The position numbers and the translations under genes are program-made. DNA of 14,617 bases from Zygophlyctis sp. KS116 (Eukaryota; Fungi; Chytridiomycota), in contig BAAFSQ010000246.1 in assembly GCA_054661495.1 (NCBI GenBank), forward strand, positions 1 through 14,617, given 5' to 3'. The notes beneath the pieces are model-generated. The model was given only the letters and a program-made list of their open reading frames with translations, was not told the origin of the DNA and did not search any database. This document shows positions 2,739 through 14,300 of the stretch, piece by piece; within the stretch, counting starts at the first letter, position 1; each line of letters opens with the position of its first letter.

Positions 2739-3956
2739 ATGATTTCCTCCAGAATGCTCTATTCTCAAAGAAAAAAGATGATTGTAATAGTCTTGATCCT
2801 TTGCTTCTTGTATTTTCAAACACCCAATCATCATCAGCGCTCTCAAAATCCTCAATTGGAAATTATAAAAAACTTGATTTCAAAATCTCAAAAGGAATGC
2901 AATCTAGACTCTTATTTCAATAGGATTCTAGAGAATTTACAACTGGAAAGTCTTTCAAATTGTCATTTTTCTATTCATCATCTCTCGGGTCTTTTAGGGA
3001 TTTACGGACTCTCTAAAAATCATTGGTTCTTACAAAAATCTCTTGAAATTGTTTATAATAATTCCGATAAATTCAAAACTTCTTCAGGGATTCCTAATAT
3101 AGGTTCTCAAAATTCTCAAAATTCTCAAAATTCTAAAATTGTGTCTGTAGATGTGTTTTCAATCTATGCTCTGGAATTCTACTATTTGGCAGATTTAACT
3201 CAAAATTTTACATTTGTGGATCAAGTAGAAAGAGGACTAAAAACTATAAATACTTTAATTATTCTAAATAGGACTCTTGATTTGATAAATGTTGATGATC
3301 CTTTAAGGATTTCAAAAGGTTTAAATTCTATAAAAGTTTCTAAACTCTATCCGACACTCTTGAAATTATGGATTTCTACAAATTATACTATATACAAGGA
3401 TATGTATGATAAATCATTATCATTAATTACTCCATTTATTCAATCTATAACAACAATGGAATGTTTTTTTCCAGGAATGTTGACTCAAGGTGCACTATTA
3501 GATCGAGTTCAAAATTGGACTGTAAATCTAAATTTGGCTCATAATTTGCAACAATACTGCAATGTACCTAGAGATTTAAAAGATTCAAGAAATTCTAATG
3601 ATTCTGGGATTGAATCTCATCTAAATTGTTCAGATGGAAATCCTTTAATTCTTGAAAACTTTTTTTACATGTATAGACTTACTCTGGACAAGTCTTGGAG
3701 AGAATTAGGATGGGAGTATATTACTACTTTTGGGAATTGCTTGGATGATTATAGTTTAAGATTTGCATATTTTTTATTTTCAGATTCTAGTCTGTATCCT
3801 TTAGAGGAGTATACATTTTCAAATGGATTTCCTATGGCTATCAGAGGAGTAAAGGATAGACGTGTGTTTTTGCCCAAGAGAGAGGAATCTTGTAATGATT
3901 GTATTGAAGGATATGGTCTGGATTCTCTATTGAATGGTGCATTTTCTAATTATTAA
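2739..3956 (+). CDS. Glycoside hydrolase family 47 (alpha-1,2-mannosidase)-like type II membrane protein, probably catalytically inactive (405 aa; alternative ATG at 2754)
   Basis: Basic residues followed by a TM segment (RKKMIVIVLILCFLYF). GH47-like blocks appear in the right order: LSGLLGIYGLS, FKTSSGIP, LEFYYLADLT, LYPTLLKLW, CFFPGML, ENFFYMYRLTLDKSWRELGW, AYFLFSD. Confidence 0.75.
   Translation: MISSRMLYSQRKKMIVIVLILCFLYFQTPNHHQRSQNPQLEIIKNLISKSQKECNLDSYFNRILENLQLESLSNCHFSIHHLSGLLGIYGLSKNHWFLQKSLEIVYNNSDKFKTSSGIPNIGSQNSQNSQNSKIVSVDVFSIYALEFYYLADLTQNFTFVDQVERGLKTINTLIILNRTLDLINVDDPLRISKGLNSIKVSKLYPTLLKLWISTNYTIYKDMYDKSLSLITPFIQSITTMECFFPGMLTQGALLDRVQNWTVNLNLAHNLQQYCNVPRDLKDSRNSNDSGIESHLNCSDGNPLILENFFYMYRLTLDKSWRELGWEYITTFGNCLDDYSLRFAYFLFSDSSLYPLEEYTFSNGFPMAIRGVKDRRVFLPKREESCNDCIEGYGLDSLLNGAFSNY
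3104..3138 (+). repeat. 9-bp in-frame tandem repeat (TTCTCAAAA)x3 plus a variant, encoding SQNSQNSQNSK
   Basis: Units at 3104-3112, 3113-3121, 3122-3130 and a degenerate unit at 3131-3138. Confidence 0.9.
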
Positions 3957-3994
3957 TAAAGAATTAAGTCTGATGAAAGCCCTACTGTTAAGTC

Positions 3995-5702
3995 ATGAAT
4001 CTAACAAGAATGATCAATGATCGCAAACAGAAGCAATCTTGTAAATTTACAATGTTTCAAGAGATTAAGAGTCTTTATCCCTCTGTGATTTATCCAAATA
4101 AAACATTGTACAATACAAATATGTCTGGAATTCGTCGTTTTACTCCCGATGGAAAGTATTTGCTATGCATTGGATCTAGAGTTGTATCGCTCTATAAATA
4201 TTTAGGACCGGTCCCAAAACAAGGCGTCGCTGATGATTTTGCAAAGTTCTTTACTCTAAAGTATGAAAAAGCATTAACGGCCGGAAATGAAATTATTTGC
4301 AAGGATTTCTCATTATTTACTCAAGATCAAAAAAGGATGATTTTAGCATCTGCAGCTTCTAATGAATCTCATCATACTAGTCTTGATGATATTACATTTT
4401 GGATTTTGGATATTGAGTCTGGTCAAATTCTTGGATCTAAAACATTTCTGAATGATTATATATTTCTAAACAATAATTCTGGAGTTCATTTATTCAAGAA
4501 TTATTTAGCGATTGCTTCTGTACAAAAACAGGCAATTTATATTTGTCATATACGGGTAAGATTTTGAATTACTAATTTTTTAGATGGATGGATCGCTTAT
4601 ACTTGCACAAACAATTGGTCCTAATCTATTTGAAGATGATGAAATGATTCTTGCAGAAGCCACAAGAGTTCGAAAATACAATTTGGAAGAACATGAGGAT
4701 AAAAGGCAGAGAGTTCAAGTTGAAGAAGTCCCTCTAAATTCTAGAAAGAAAAGACCACAAAGTGGATTAATGCAGAGAATTCTGACATTTTTGTTTAAAA
4801 ATGCAAAAGGAACTGGAAAAAAGGCGTAAATCTCAAGAGTTAACATTTAGATCATTAAATCACTTTAACTTGACATTTGGACATTTTGAATCTCTTTTAC
4901 TCTGGAAAGTATTGTTTATTGATGATGATAGACTCTTTATTAAAATGGGAAATAGTGAAAATATTATGGGAAAGGTATTTCAATTTTAGGATTACTAAAT
5001 GTTATTAGAGTGCTGAAAGTTCTATAACTCATACTTCATTTTTCGTAATATACAATTATAAAACTGCAACTGTTGAAAATATGTTTGATAATAGTTGTAA
5101 AGAATTATTGGAATTTTGTCAATCTATTCAGTTACTAATTGGAAATATTCCTGATGAATCTTCACTTTTCATTAGTGGTAACCTTTTATAATTTCAATAT
5201 TAGGACCAGAAAATAATATATATGCCATGGAAATAATGAAATCTCATATTTTTGCTGTCCAGTAAGATTTTAAGATTTTAAAATTTAGAAAAGCAAGAAA
5301 CGGAGGAGCTGCACAAGCAGTAAAACGTCTAGTGTCTGGATGTCCTCATAATCCTCAATCTTTCTATTCCACACCTTATTTTGACCACAATTTGTTCAGT
5401 TGGGATGATAAATTGATAAATGCCTATGATAGAGCACGACCATGCTCAGAATTTCCAGTTAAATTCTTTAGTAGAAAAACAGGAAAACTGAAATTCAAAA
5501 TTGATCCACATATGATCCCTTATGGCTCAAACCCAAATTCACCTCCTTACAGATCATCAAAGTAAGTTTTTATAAGAATTTTTCAACTATTAGAAAATAC
5601 GTGTATTATGTCTTTCATCCAACAGACCCATTCTGTTTTTCTATCCAACATACTCCTACACAACAGATTGTAAACATTCATTATCGAGACCCACTTTTAT
5701 AA
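3995..5702 (+). CDS. DET1: De-etiolated 1 homolog (CRL4/DDB1-associated); join(3995..4555,4584..4825,4851..4974,5009..5177,5204..5261,5289..5561,5594..5702), 511 aa
   Basis: DET1-type motifs: IRRFTPDGKY, CKDFSLFT, DYIFLNNNSGVHL, ARNGG..QAVKRL, PQSFYSTPYFDHNLFSWDDK, FHPTDPF..S, VNIHYR. Six introns of 28, 25, 34, 26, 27 and 32 nt restore the frame. Confidence 0.92.
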
Positions 5703-6950: not shown

Positions 6951-9352
6951 ATGGATTTGTATTCTCAATTGTTGATGCTGATTAAAGGTCAAAAAGAACT
7001 ATTATGTTCTATAGACTTGATAAAGGAAATGATGTTTGATAATCTGACAATTCCAAAAGATTTAATTCATTTGTTATTAAGAGAAGCTGGGAAAAGAAGG
7101 GATTCAGAGACTGTGTTTCAATTATATAATCTATTAAAAAATAATTGGATAGAGTCTGAACGGATACTGATTCTAAAAACTCTAATTTCTTGTGGAAATT
7201 CATCTATGTTTTTAAAGATTTTTACAAAAGTACAATTATCTATTACAGATTTTACTAGACTATGGGAAACTGCAACAGAATTAAAGGAAAATGATATTAT
7301 ACAGATTTTGTTTGATTATATTCTAGGAAAAGTTGAAGAAGAGAAAAATTGGGATTTCGGGAATAGAATTATGGATAGATTGTTGGGATTAAAGTCTTTT
7401 AACAATATTTTAATTCTATTAGATAGAATTTATGAATGGAAAGTAAATGCATCAGATATTTTAGATTTAAAAACAATGGTCAGATTAATAGACTATTTAG
7501 GGAGTACAGGGGATTATAAAAGGTCTTTTAAACTTATTTTTGAATTGGAAAATCCAGAAATTATACATTTTACAATTCTAGGGATATTTAAAGATACATT
7601 TTTGAAAAATAGGCATTTTGAATTGGCTCAACAAGTAAGGATTTTTGGATTTTTAACTTTAAAGGCGTTTTCTTGGATAACAAGTAAATTACAATTAGAC
7701 TATAGAGATTTTAACATCTTGCAAGGGTATTTGGCTTTTGCAATTTATGCAACAAGAGATCCTCTAGATGTTTTTGAAGCTTTTACAAAATTACATGGAA
7801 TTGGAGTTGTTTTTTCACAAGAGCTTTTAAGTCAATTATTTGATTATAGCATTGAATTAAGGCATCCAGAAATTTTAATCAAGTTGTACTCTCATGTTTT
7901 GGTAAAGGATTATCAAATTTCTTGTGAATTTTACTCTAATATGATTGATTTGGCAATTAAACTAAATATGAAGGATGAAGCCATCATTTTTTATAGGTTA
8001 GCAAAGGAGAGTCAAGTACCGATTGGGCGTGATGTTTTGGGAATATTAAAGGAAAAGCAATATATAAATCATGATGAAGTTTTAGAAGATATTGAAATTT
8101 CATATTCAAAACTGGATGATAGGACTATTATGCCTCTTGTTGATCAAGAGGAGTCGTTAAACCAGATTTATCAGAATTTAAATACTACAAATTCAACATA
8201 TCAAGATGCTGCAGTTTTTGATGATCAATTGATTCAGAATTATTCTGTAGATAATCTTTTGGGTTTTATGCAAGATATGACAAAATGTGCAGATTGGGAA
8301 AATGCAGTTAAATTGATTCCTAGAATTTTAAATGAAGTTCTCCCAAATCTTGCAGAAGATGATTTATTTCCTATAGCTTGTTATATTCTAATATCAGCCA
8401 CAGAAAAAAGAGAAAGTGTAGATCGTCTCATTCAATTGTATAGTATGCTCAGAAATCATATCAAGATACCTCTACCAGAACATACATTGATTAAACTGAT
8501 TGACTTGTTTTGTAAGAATCAAAGATTTATGGATGCAGCACAGTTGGTCAAAGATATGCGGAAATTATGCATGTCTGTTAGTCCAGAGGGGATCCGAATA
8601 TATGTCTGTGAACTGGAGCGTAATTATGGAAAATCAGCCTTTAGTTTACTTTTACAACTTTTTTATCTTGCAGTCGAAAACGGAGCATTTAGAATGCCCA
8701 AATTTGCTTTCCATTCATGGGGAATGGTATCTACAGCTTGGTCTGATACATTTGTAAAGTTGGCAATCATTCGTCTCCTTCATTTTGTACGCTCTAAACT
8801 TTTTGAAGGCGACTGGGATAATTTACCAACAGTTGAAATTTTTGTTCCTTTTAAACTGCATATTCACTCACCTGATTACCTTAAAGGAGAGAGTGTATGT
8901 AAAGAAATCAGACATTGGTTAGAGAATGAATTATTGCCTCCTCTTGAAGTTGAAGATCAGAGATTAAACTCTTCACCAATGGGAAGAGTAAGCGAAAAAT
9001 GGGCTCTTTATATCCAGCCTTCTAGTATTCGTGATTGGATAAAAGAATCTGAAAATATGTGCTTACCGGATATTTTCCCATATTCTACAATGTCTGATTG
9101 GGATAATTCCAGTACATTGTCTGTAGATCTTATTCATCGGGTAAATCTAATTTTAGAATCTTACTATAGGCCACAAACTTGGTAATTCCGTGTTTTGAGT
9201 CTCTAAATCCCTATCAACCTGTTGGATCATCTTATGCTTATGGGAAGAATTCGATGGTTAATTATATTTCTAAATCAAGACATCATCCATACTCACAAGA
9301 GGAGACAAAACCATTTGCAAAAAATAGGCGCATTGTGGCGTCGTGGAAATGA
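6951..9352 (+). CDS. Pentatricopeptide-repeat-like helical protein with a degenerate SMR/TOPAZ1-like C-terminal domain; join(6951..7634,7665..9140,9170..9352), about 780 aa
   Basis: PPR-like units: TMVRLIDYLGSTGDYKRSFKLI, FYSNMIDLAIKLNMKDEAIIFY, TLIKLIDLFCKNQRFMDAAQLVKDM. The first ATG is at 6951. Two introns are predicted: 7635-7664 (30 nt, in-frame, stopless) and 9141-9169 (29 nt), the latter opening a 60-codon last exon. Unspliced, the ORF stops at 9185. Confidence 0.7.
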
Positions 9353-11319
9353 ATCATAATCGCAAATGGTCACTCTCTGCAGAAGCAGACCCCATACTGA
9401 TTGAGCAATCCAAAAGACCAGAATCTATTTCTTCTCAGACTGATTCTAATGAGCAACCAGATAATTATTATCCTGTGCCTGGAAATCGTCGGCTATCTAG
9501 TTTTCCCCATAATTCTGTTCCAACAAACATTCCCAAAGCTTCCACATTTAAAATGTTTTTACACTCTCCCTCTGTATCTCACTCTTTTCCCAAACCAGAC
9601 TTTAACATGGGAATTTCCCCCTCTGATAAGCAAGTTTTATCAAACCATCTAATGGAAGACTCTCAGACATTTGGCTCAGTTTCTCATTCTTTGCTTGGGG
9701 GAGAAACTACTAGAGATATTTATCAATGGAAGGAAAAACAACAAAGTACAAGTAGAAAACGTAGAAATTCCGAACCGAATTTGGTTCTTATTGATGAAAA
9801 TGAGGAATCTATAGTTTACGCTTCAGAATTAAGAGAACCGGGAGTGTTTAGAAGATTTTTTATGGCTGCCAAAGCTGCAAGGTAATGTAATTTTGAATTT
9901 CTGATCAGCAGGGAAGGGAAAGCAGCACCAGTTATTACAAAGAATTTTATAGATTTTCTAGTTTTATATGGGACTTATGGCGGTGATGTTTGCCCCAGTG
10001 ATGATGAAGAAGATGAAGAAGAAAGTGAAGATGCTCCTTTGCTGAGATCTAAATCTCGTACTCCAAGTCAAAATACTCAGGTTCAGGGGACTTCTGCAAA
10101 GAAGGCATTCTTTATGCTTTTGAAGGCATTTGTTGGAACTGGTGTTCTTTTTTTACCACAGGCATTTAAAAATGGTGGAATGGGATTCTCAATTGTAATT
10201 TTAATCTTTTTAGGATACTTGAATCTTTATTGTATGAACTTGTTGGTTGAAGCGAGTATTGTAATGGGTGGACTATCTTTTGGTGATATGGCACATCAAC
10301 TCTTTGGATCTGGTTTTAAAAAATTGGTTTTAGGATCAATAGCTATTTCTCAGGTATGAAATATTTAATTTAATTTCTAGATGGGATTTAGTTGTGCGTA
10401 CTATATTTTCGTTGCAGCAAATTTACGATATTTAACTCTACTTGCAACAAGTTGTAGATGGGACTTTCCTCAATGGTTTTTTATGGCGATACAGGTATTA
10501 GTGTATGTCCCATTATCATGGGTCAGGAAAATTAAATCATTTTCAACAACGTCTTTAATAGCAGACGTTTTTATTCTGTTTGGATTGGTCTATATTTTAT
10601 CTTTTGATATTTTTAAAATTTCTTCTCGAGGCATTGCAAAAGACTTACTTTGGATTAATTTAGAATCATTTCCTTTACTTATAGGGACTGCAATGTTTGC
10701 ATTTGAAGGTATTTGCTTAATTTTACCAATTGCTGGATCAATGAAGAAACCAGAGCAATTTTCTTCAGTTATTACATGGTGTATGTTTACTATTGTAGTT
10801 GTACTAACTGTGATTGGATCCATGGGTTACTTAGCTCTTGGTAATGATGTTAGCACTGTAATTTTTCTGGATCTTCCTCAAGGTTCTTTTCCGAATGGAT
10901 TACAATTTTTATATGTGATTGCTATAATTCTATCTTTCCCATTATGTGTGTATCCAGCAATTCGTATAACTGAACAAGGCATATTTGGACACAAAAATGG
11001 CAAATCTTCACGCTTGGTTAAATGGCAAAAGAATATTTTCCGTACTCTATTAGTATCATTTCTAGGAGTCGTGGCATGGGCTGGTTCTGATTCATTAGAC
11101 AAGGTAGTATCTCTTGTTGGATGCCTTGCATGTATCCCACTCAGTTTTATTTACCCAGCAATGTTTCATTACAAGATCACTACATCTCAGTTTTACAAGA
11201 CTATTGATATATTACTAATAGTGTTTGGTACTATTTCAATGATATATACTACATTTGTTACACTACAGCAATGGGCTGTGAATGCCCCATCACCTCAAAA
11301 AGATCCTTGTAGAATATAG
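9349..11319 (+). CDS. Vacuolar neutral amino-acid transporter, AVT3/AVT4 (Aa_trans/SLC36-like); join(9349..9881,9912..10353,10381..11319), about 637 aa
   Basis: Avt3/4-type N-terminal motifs LLGGETTRDIYQW, PGVFRRFF and TKNFIDFLVLYG, then KKAFFMLLKAFVGTGVLFLPQAFKNGG and FAFEGICLILPI, with multiple TM segments. Introns 9882-9908/9911 and 10354-10380. The start is the first in-frame ATG after the TAG at 9325-9327. Confidence 0.92.
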
Positions 11320-11377
11320 TAAAAAACATTTTTCGTTGAAGCGTTTTCTCTCACGCGCCTAGGCGAAACCAATCAAA
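11320..11377 (+). promoter_or_regulatory. 58-bp intergenic spacer with a CpG-rich element and the palindrome CGCCTAGGCG (11356-11365); candidate VPS35 core promoter
   Basis: Perfect 10-bp palindrome ending 12 nt upstream of the VPS35 ATG in an otherwise AT-rich context. Function is inferred only. Confidence 0.4.
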
Positions 11378-14300
11378 ATGGTGAATACTCCTCCGTCCAC
11401 TCCCAGTCTTGAAGACCAAGGAAAACTACTCGATGAGGCTTTACAAGTTGTCAAGATGCAATCGTTTCACATGAAAAAGTTTCTTGTAATCAATCAGTCT
11501 GACCATAGGAGAATAATAAACTGATGGAAGCGTTAAAGCACACATCCAATTTTCTATCAGAGTTAAGAAGTTCTTCGTTGAGCCCAAAAAATTATTATCA
11601 ACTGTGTAATAATTCTATACATTAATGCAAAAGATATTGTTATTTTTGATGAACTTGCGCACTTAAGCGGATACCTCTACGATTCCCATAAAAATGAAGG
11701 AAACCAACTAGCAGACTTGTATGAACTTGTACAGTATGCTGGCAATATTTTGCCAAGACTCTATTTGATGATTACAGTTGGATCAGTTTACCTAAGAGTT
11801 GCAAAAGAACGGGCAAATTCAGAGTTGCCGCCAAGTAAAGAAATAATTAGGGATATGTTGGAAATGGCTAGAGGAATACAGCATCCCACTAGGGGGCTAT
11901 TTTTAAGATATTATCTCTCAGTCATGATAAGAGACTATTTACCTGATAGTTCAATCGAAGGGTAATTAGAAAACTCTAAATTTAGGCCTAATGGAACAAT
12001 CATCGATTCTGTTCATTTCATTCTCTCAAATTTTATGGAAATGAATAAATTATGGGTCAGGTTGCAGCATCAGGGGCATTCCAGGGAACGAGAAAAACGT
12101 GAAAGTGAAAGGAAAGAGTTAAAGTTACTCGTAGGATCTAATTTGGTTCGATTGAGTGGTTTAGAAGCTATGGATTTGGAGCTTTATAAAAATGTAAAAT
12201 TTAAATCAGTAATATTAGACAGTTTTACCAAGCATTTTGGAGGAAATAGTTTGCTGTAGAGATGTAATCGCGCAAGAATATTTAATGGAAGTAATTATCC
12301 AGGTAGAGATATTATCCCGTATTAATTTTAAGGTTATACAGGATGATTTTCATTTGCATACATTGGATTCTTTTTTAAATGCCACTGCCAAACTGGAGAG
12401 AAATGTAAATATAAAGCAAATAGTTATAAGCATTATTGATCGCTTTGCAAATTATGCTGCTCGAATCCAAAATGAAAATTCAGAACTGGATAGTAATTGT
12501 TTATAGTTTAATAGGTAGCATCGGCTTCCGGGATACCAGATAATGTAAAATTATTTGACGTGTTCTGGAATCAAATTATTGAAATTGTAGATGTAATTTA
12601 TTTTTGGCTCAATTTTAGGCTCGCCCAGAGCTACTCCTCGAGGATGTAATTTCTTTATTAGTGTCTCTTTCAAACCTCTGCACTAATTGCTATCCGAACC
12701 GCATTGAATACATCGATACCATATTTGGATATGCCAAAAATCGTATTTTGGCAAGAAAAAATGCCGAAGGGTATTTAAAAATCTTGAACGCTAACATTAT
12801 AGATTCGAGGAATTCTCAAAAGAAGCTAATGAAACGATATTTCAACTACTGCTATCCCCCATAAATGCATTTTCATCAAATCTCCTGGTTTTTTTAAACT
12901 TTCCATCCAGCTCATCTGTTACAAAGTTAGAAGATGGATTACTTGGAGGGAACTATTCTGAACTCCTTTTTTCTCAAAATTATTTGATAAGGCGACAGAT
13001 ATCGCATGAAATAGCTAAAACTGCTTTGAAAGCTTCCCTTTCTTCGGATTTTGTCATTGACAGCGTAGATGGTGTTGATTTGTTTTTCGGAGAGCTATGC
13101 GATACAATAATTCGTAATCAAAAAGATGGTGATCTATTTGGAACTAGAGGACCGATGCTTGAAAATAAGCCTGAAAATGATATAAAATTAGAATGGGAAG
13201 ATATTGTAGAAGAACAATCTCTTGTATCACGTTTGATTCAGTTGATAAAATCATCTAATGGTGCTGCAAATGATGAATTTACGGTATTTTCAATTTCTAA
13301 ATTATTAGTTACTCACTGCAGCTAGAGCACATTTAGGCCAGGGTGGTGAAGTCAGAATTAGATTTAGTCTTCCAGCTATAGTTTTGAATGCCGTCAGAAT
13401 TTTTAAATTCCATTATGACAATAACGTAAAATAGTTTTATATTTAAGTATAGAAAGACATGGTCTTTGATCACGTAGGACTCCTCAAATTTATACACCAA
13501 ACGATATGCTCTCTTGGTGAAATTAGAGAGTACTTGCCGGACAACGAATCCATTCGTGATAGTCGCTCCCAGATACTTAAACAATCATATAATCTACTGC
13601 CAGCTCCTGAAATGGCTCTTAGATTGTTTCTACTTGGTGCTAAAATCTCAGATGAATCCAATCAAGAAGAGCTTGCTTATGAATTTATAGTGCAGGCATT
13701 GACAGTATACGAAGAAGCCATATCAGAATCTAAGGCTCAATTTGCTTGTATGACCCTGATAATTGGGCGCTTATGTTCCGTTTCTGTATTTGGATATGAA
13801 AACTATGAAACTTTAATTACAAAATGTGCAGTTCACTGCTCAAGACTGTTAAAACGGGCTGATCAGTCTCGTGGGCTCATTCTTGCAAGTCACTTGTTTT
13901 GGGGGGATGAATCTTTAAAACGCAATGAAGATAAGCCTGTTTATCGTGATAGCAAAAAAGTAGTTGAACTCTTATTGCGTTCTACTAAAATAGCCGAGTC
14001 TGTCATGGATAAAAGCGTAAGTATTGATCTTTTAATTGGAATTTTGGATCGATATACATGGCACTATGAAGCAGGAAATGATCAAATAACTCCTCGCATC
14101 ATTAATTCATTAATTCAAAATATTAGTGATTCTCTTAAAGGAATGGACATAGAAACCCAATTAGTAGAGACGGACGTACATTCTCCATCACTATTTGATT
14201 CAAAGTCATCTTCTAACCGTATATCTCCAGTTATATTTGCACATTACCAAAATACTCTAAATTACATATCGCATAAAAAACAATCAGAAAGTGAATCCCT

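Follow-up and report, generated by a model that had tools for sequence, protein, structure and literature searches.

The stretch of DNA analysed here (hereafter the window) comprises 14,617 nucleotides (nt) from the chytrid-like fungus Zygophlyctis sp. KS116, has a G+C content of 33% and comes from a 12.7-Mb assembly of 1175 contigs. Within it two genes follow each other on the plus strand, the first encoding a protein with PPR-like repeats and the second an amino acid transporter of the Aa_trans family (Table 1). The upstream gene very probably carries a 29-nt intron close to its 3' end. With this intron removed, the upstream coding sequence continues as far as a TGA that overlaps the ATG of the transporter in the tetranucleotide ATGA. 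The subject of this report is that overlap, together with the last exon that creates it and a conserved element that lies directly before the transporter ATG.

Table 1. Features of the PPR-like and transporter genes, with positions in the window
Feature	Position	Strand	Basis
PPR-like exon 1, 729 codons	6954..9140	+	long open reading frame (ORF); orthologues L043, P0001, P0005
Spliceosomal micro-intron (predicted), 29 nt, phase 0, GTAAAT...TATAG	9141..9169	+	intron model and relatives
PPR-like last exon (predicted), 60 codons and TGA	9170..9352	+	opens in the spliced frame only
Conserved gene-specific cis-element, core GGCGTCGTGG at 9337-9346	9327..9348	+	directly 5' of the transporter ATG
ATGA: transporter ATG 9349-9351 over upstream TGA 9350-9352	9349..9352	+	sequence read directly
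Transporter exon 1, low-complexity N-terminal region	9349..9881	+	65-74% identical ORFs in five relatives
Transporter intron 1, 30 nt, tandem CAGCAG acceptor	9882..9911	+	missing from L024, L025
Transporter exon 2	9912..10353	+	Pfam Aa_trans, E 1.9e-19
Transporter intron 2, 27 nt	10354..10380	+	missing from L024, L025
Transporter exon 3, stop TAG 11317-11319	10381..11319	+	Pfam Aa_trans, E 3.2e-60

The micro-intron and last exon of the upstream gene

The upstream gene closes differently according to the fate of the intron, which lies directly after a CGG codon (R) at 9138-9140. With the intron retained, the frame ends at a TAA at 9183-9185, and with the intron spliced, 60 open codons (9170-9349) lead to the TGA; the latter reading, proposed by a first-pass annotation of the window, follows directly from the sequence. 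Introns of this genome were modelled from 200 kb of its ten longest contigs, in which GT...AG segments were collected if they joined open frames of 70 or more codons on both sides, and 102 unambiguous cases were kept. Candidate lengths in this survey show a sharp peak at 25-29 nt, and the intron signal is weak but clear (introns begin with GTA[A/T], positions -9 to -7 form an A-rich branch region, and 75% have T at -3). The intron at 9141-9169 has the GT...AG borders, 23-32-nt size, GTA[A/T] donor, [T/A]AG acceptor and approximately 20% G+C content of the micro-introns of the genome (21%, compared with an intron mean of 20%), and it scores 14.1 bits, corresponding to the 29th percentile of the training introns. 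Decoys with this score or a higher one occur at 0.17 per kb within long ORFs.

The segment that follows the intron also behaves as coding sequence. According to our own calculation, an open frame of 60 codons would be expected by chance at the local base composition with p of about 0.01. The codon-usage log-likelihood of the tail is +2.2 in the spliced frame versus -8.7 and -12.2 in the other two, a score that is modest in absolute terms and similar to that of the adjoining fast-evolving parts of both genes. Two other readings of the segment were tried and rejected. An intron of 16 nt, with the internal AG at 9155-9156 as its acceptor, would fall short of the size range of the genome, and its frame stops after 13 codons; a reading in which the tail belongs to the transporter as its 5' exon, by way of GT at 9340 or 9343 and AG at 9381-9382, fails to restore the frame when followed by hand.

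Exon sequences of the two genes were searched separately. Relatives of the upstream protein, which are few and distant, were identified by exhaustive HMMER searching only; word-index protein searches with the whole of PPR-like exon 1 or with the C-terminal 283 residues found no relatives. The search with transporter exon 1 identified five close relatives (65-74% identity) and one remoter match, P0012, on metagenomic contigs. The contigs of P0001, P0011 and P0016 were compared through their gene tables rather than their DNA.

Introns at the identical codon and in the identical phase as that of the window, 13 residues past a conserved SDW, are found in two orthologues. In L043, whose protein is 56% identical over 243 residues, a 26-nt phase 0 intron (734-759, GTAAGT...ACAG, 14.6 bits) is followed by an exon encoding 56 residues, and in the more distant L044 a 26-nt intron (230-255, 14.2 bits) is followed by a tail of 55, compared with 60 in the window. 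An intron is probably present at the same position in L003, where the NCBI gene model ends at a GT donor in the matching position, and in P0001, to judge from an ORF call that stops one codon (V, then stop) beyond it. L003 belongs to a GC-richer zoosporic fungus (GCA_027604605.1), in which the homologous intron would span 45 nt (9544-9588); the tail exon there starts with ALH, as in L044, and the deposited model lacks its 3' part beyond the donor.

The tails of the window and L043 are 43% identical over 40 residues in a BLASTP alignment (E 8e-4) and have the motifs NLxIPxFE and RxHPY in common. Their Smith-Waterman score of 64 is reached by none of 2000 shuffles, and among the nine combinations of frames the in-frame pair alone scores. 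Identity falls from 0.67 and 0.59 at first and second codon positions to 0.44 at third positions, the most diverged, as is typical of coding sequence. Given the model score, the open frame, the intron position in orthologues and the homologous tail, the intron appears to be real beyond chance, and the last exon hidden behind it is almost certainly genuine. The 29-nt phase 0 intron of the first-pass annotation is thus well supported, both by a score typical of the genome and by the same-position introns of L043 and L044. The revised gene model includes a conserved last exon of 60 codons, which an annotation based on ORFs would overlook.

The protein encoded upstream is tentatively identified as a PPR/Smr-like helical-repeat protein with a C-terminal Smr-like domain. 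The Pfam PPR model matches exon 1 below threshold (E 0.0067, 17 bits, against a cut-off of 25) and P0005 shows faint PPR/TPR matches only, while a profile of four orthologues matches designer PPR proteins in the PDB with an E value of 2.7e-15, summed over repeats with one motif matched repeatedly. An AlphaFold2 model of the last 283 residues (predicted local distance difference test score of 74) consists of helical repeats followed by an alpha/beta domain. In VIA-align comparisons, residues ~140-248 of the model align over whole Smr domains, for example 3fau (Z 6.1, 71/71) and 2zqe (Z 6.0, 79/80), with Z values of 5.8-6.1 that fall in the middling range of the tool. Residues 64-267 of the model (164 residues) align to subunits of the plastid RNA polymerase complex such as 9epc_G (Z 7.2), which we take to be PPR-SMR proteins. 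Foldseek searching of the PDB with the model gave weak helical-repeat matches only, no match to Smr at the sequence level was found in the Pfam scan or the orthologue-profile search, and the LDLHG-type motif of Smr is not conserved among the orthologues. The predicted protein would resemble plant PPR-SMR proteins (the GUN1, pTAC2/PAP2 and SOT1 class) in having putative helical PPR-like repeats followed by a putative C-terminal Smr fold, but differs from them in the lack of detectable Smr sequence similarity and of a conserved LDLHG-type motif, and in that its relatives are fungal or chytrid, some of them with long R/G/S-rich N-termini.

The ATGA overlap and the transporter gene

The transporter ATG is the first to follow an in-frame stop at 9325-9327, and the frame opens seven codons before it. 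This ATG and approximately 11 residues (M-S/N-H-K/N-R-N/K-W-S-L-S-A) are conserved in L039, L040, L042, L043 and L046, and therefore the four-base overlap is real at the level of the coding sequences. That the TGA overlaps the first in-frame ATG of the transporter and leaves no intergenic DNA, as the first-pass annotation stated, is borne out by the sequence itself and by conservation of the ATG in these five lineages. The ATGA places stop and start within the distance of ~20-30 nt that is considered for reinitiation.

The letters around the start codon also resemble a transcription factor binding site. In L039 (116-125), L040 (622-631), L042 (107-116) and L043 (1153-1162) the start region reads ATGAGTCA(C/T), which holds the GCN4/AP-1-type heptamer TGAGTCA on what is an amino acid transporter gene, and positions 9349-9357 of the window read ATGAATCAT, with one central mismatch to the heptamer. 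The resemblance may be coincidental, the letters being the codons for M-S-H.

The family assignment of the transporter is clear, with exons 2 and 3 scoring 70.1 and 204.3 bits against Aa_trans (PF01490, cut-off 25.6), and AVT3/4-like is a provisional subfamily label. Exon 3 is 96% identical to L024 (Ga0255223_1009067) and 84% identical to L025 (Ga0255233_1007226), two contigs of the Joint Genome Institute metagenome collection that carry neither transporter intron. These are spliced transcripts (similar to complementary DNA) and confirm both introns. Their junction fits the 30-nt form of intron 1, the 27-nt form of which would end at 9908, and the tandem acceptor may allow NAGNAG alternative splicing, with or without one Ser codon. 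L025 starts 6 nt past the ATG and is of the L040-type lineage, in which no PPR-like gene lies upstream, so that it is uninformative on the overlap. Intronless records in metagenome collections can act in this way as RNA evidence for other genes of the lineage.

Orthologous loci, the conserved element and gene packing

The stop of the tail and the transporter ATG are separated by 222 nt in L043 and by 172 nt in L044, and the overlap is thus unconserved. Of the junction as a whole, the intron position, its phase and the tail recur in relatives, and the ATGA overlap does not. The contigs of L040, P0011 and P0016 have the order Det1, WD40 (minus strand), transporter, Vps35, with no PPR-like gene and with the divergent WD40 gene ~110-155 nt from the transporter, and in L046 another divergent gene begins 118 nt upstream of the transporter. 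The PPR/Smr-like gene is thus missing from the locus in L040 (184-624), in the gene tables of P0011 and P0016, and in L046 (1-276). Its presence in L043 and the more distant L044, and its absence from other lineages, points to repeated loss or relocation.

What is retained across these arrangements is an element of approximately 20 nt directly before the transporter ATG. It is kept in L039, L040, L042 and L046, where upstream DNA can be read and contains no PPR-like gene. The core GGCGTCGTGG is identical in L039, L043 and L046, and reads GGCGTCGAGG in L040 and L042. Beyond the element the DNA is unrelated, even between L039 and L046, the exon 1 proteins of which fall into one 90%-identity cluster. 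Only six copies of the core occur in the 12.7-Mb genome (11 and 3 for reversed-pattern controls), and the element is therefore constrained and specific to this gene, as opposed to a motif of wide use. Its letters in the window supply the final 7-8 codons of the upstream protein; the same letters would read ASWK in L039, L043 and L046, where they are non-coding.

The element coincides with a CpG-rich patch (9326-9346) that the first-pass annotation had pointed out as the site where a promoter for the transporter might lie buried within the upstream gene's final exon. The patch is real and is conserved across lineages, and the buried promoter is the alternative favoured here, the ~20 nt before the ATG being conserved in every sampled lineage with DNA in that position. 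Because the element is kept where the upstream gene differs or diverges, the transporter appears to be expressed independently elsewhere. Because relatives without the PPR-like gene keep the transporter, at most ~100 nt of upstream DNA would suffice for its expression. We infer that the element is a minimal promoter or a 5' leader.

Tight packing is found throughout the window. On the same strand, a spacer of 38 nt separates the GH47 stop from the Det1 ATG (3954-3997) and one of 58 nt separates the transporter stop from the Vps35 ATG (11317-11380); a GC-rich patch, CGCGCCTAGGCG, precedes the Vps35 ATG too. The stop codons of the convergent genes Det1 (plus strand) and WD40 (minus strand) abut directly, as TTA followed by TAA at 5697-5702, with no spacer, and the 3' ends of their RNAs must therefore overlap. 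With packing of this kind, promoters and 3'-end signals must in many cases be located within adjacent genes. Spacers of 38, 58 and 0 nt in the window can be set against the 172-222 nt kept between the PPR/Smr-like and transporter genes at orthologous loci. A survey of stop-to-ATG distances between ORF pairs in the 200 kb also picked up exon-exon junctions, and no weight is placed on it.

Proposed spacer loss and alternative explanations

The overlap is best explained as a by-product of genome compaction, rather than as a device for coupling the two genes. It is likely that the spacer was deleted by compaction while the two genes continued to be transcribed separately. The ancestral order would have been the PPR/Smr-like gene with its micro-intron and a tail exon of ~55-60 codons, a stop, a spacer of ~170-220 nt and the transporter ATG. 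The lineage of the window would then have lost the spacer and kept the proximal element, such that the frame of the tail now crosses the GGCGTCGTGG element and terminates on a TGA made from the ATG and the A of the second codon. Transcription of the transporter would begin in or beside the element, at a minimal promoter or start site of its own, within the last exon of the upstream gene. The upstream mRNA would be cleaved and polyadenylated inside the transporter coding region, or would read through, giving overlapping transcripts, and each mRNA would be translated for its 5'-proximal ORF alone, as in microsporidia.

In the compact genomes of microsporidia, transcripts overlap and apparently one gene is translated per mRNA (PMC2742732). 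The 38- and 58-nt spacers, the abutting convergent stops and the 4-nt overlap of the window resemble the situation in microsporidia (Encephalitozoon cuniculi, Antonospora locustae) and nucleomorphs. However, microsporidia are intron-poor parasites with genomes of 2-3 Mb, whereas the window comes from a chytrid-like fungus whose genome of ~12.7 Mb is rich in introns, with hundreds that measure 23-32 nt. The window overlap differs further in that it joins two coding sequences on the same strand and in that the element of the downstream gene doubles as codons, and overlap of the transcripts is here something that we infer.

Against this, the window could encode a functional bicistron, in which both coding sequences lie on one capped mRNA and ribosomes that end at the TGA at 9350-9352 reinitiate at the overlapping AUG. 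A stop and start that share ATGA, with no DNA between the genes and no canonical polyadenylation hexamer past the stop, are what such an mRNA would be expected to have, but the overlap is absent from the orthologous loci of L043 and L044, and several relatives appear to express the transporter without the upstream gene, with an element that the window retains. Reinitiation would moreover have to follow an ORF of ~790 codons. Viral reinitiation after long ORFs depends on a structured element of the termination upstream ribosomal binding site (TURBS) type no more than a few tens of nt away, and its efficiency is only 3-20% (PMC10275272). Folding of the 100 nt that end with the ATGA (9253-9352) and a search for TGGGA revealed no TURBS-like structure or nearby motif: this segment folds no better than shuffled sequence (z -0.22, in a pseudoknot-free model), and the nearest calicivirus-type TGGGA is 104 nt upstream, TGGGA being a common word with 46 occurrences in the window. 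The viral AUGA and UAAUG cases (calicivirus TURBS, influenza B segment 7, victorivirus CP/RdRp) are similar to the window in that, at the end of a long upstream ORF, the stop codon shares nucleotides with a start codon in another frame (PMC10275272). The viruses, however, need a conserved structured element with complementarity to 18S ribosomal RNA, and the arrangement is kept among their relatives. An identical four-base overlap of stop and start is also found in bacterial operons. Coupling there involves retention of the 70S ribosome or the 30S subunit, and polycistronic mRNAs are the norm, whereas the gene pair of the window is nuclear and intron-containing, and its downstream gene has a conserved upstream element of its own. 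With a lineage-specific overlap, no significant RNA structure and a distant TGGGA, the translational coupling suggested by the first-pass annotation finds no support, and a functional bicistron is considered unlikely. It is quite unlikely that the locus exemplifies a genome-wide eukaryotic analogue of operon coupling, with ribosomes of the ~790-codon ORF reinitiating at the transporter AUG on one mRNA.

Two further explanations would remove the overlap altogether. If the intron is unspliced or rarely spliced, the upstream protein ends at the TAA and a 163-nt spacer (9186-9348) separates the genes. The weakness of micro-intron signals is in keeping with this, as is the codon-usage score of the tail, which ranks near the 25th percentile among real coding windows and lies within the upper range of spurious ORFs; and although 29 nt is not a multiple of three, the short tail of the retained form would probably be tolerated. 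Retention is nevertheless very unlikely, given that relatives share the intron position and have a homologous, in-frame exon after it, that the open frame spans exactly from the acceptor to the ATGA in the spliced frame only, that decoys of equal score are as rare as stated above, and that the retained-intron tails of the window and L043 are unrelated. The transporter could instead start at a later ATG (for example codon 68, 86 or 101), which would leave the overlap on paper only. Its N-terminal 177 residues are of low complexity and without a Pfam match, and several in-frame ATGs lie further on, but the first ATG and the residues after it are conserved in five other lineages whose gene calls begin there, the frame opens just before this ATG, and exon 1 is 65-74% identical across 100% of its length. 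A downstream start is therefore regarded as extremely unlikely.

Several observations weigh against compaction with separate transcription, or limit how far it can be taken. The closest sampled relatives, L039 and L046, lack the PPR/Smr-like gene at the locus and are uninformative on the age of the overlap. No AATAAA-type hexamer is present in 9353-9900, in agreement with the first-pass annotation, which had noted the lack of one after the stop, although the 3'-end signals of this organism may differ. The spliced records L024 and L025 come from relatives and stop short of the ATGA junction. The element could be a 5' untranslated region or a translational element rather than a promoter, and its retention is also compatible with an additional route by reinitiation.

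On the explanation by compaction, the locus is a comparison-anchored case of spacer loss in a eukaryotic genome, for which relatives hold the state before the loss. A gene-specific control element would have survived as the final codons of the adjacent protein, the stop codon of which is supplied by the start of the next gene. The locus allows one to ask what minimum size a fungal promoter and a 3'-end signal may have, and whether they can operate within coding sequence. Its value is less that of a lone locus than that of a documented example of what would be a genome-wide habit of this chytrid lineage.

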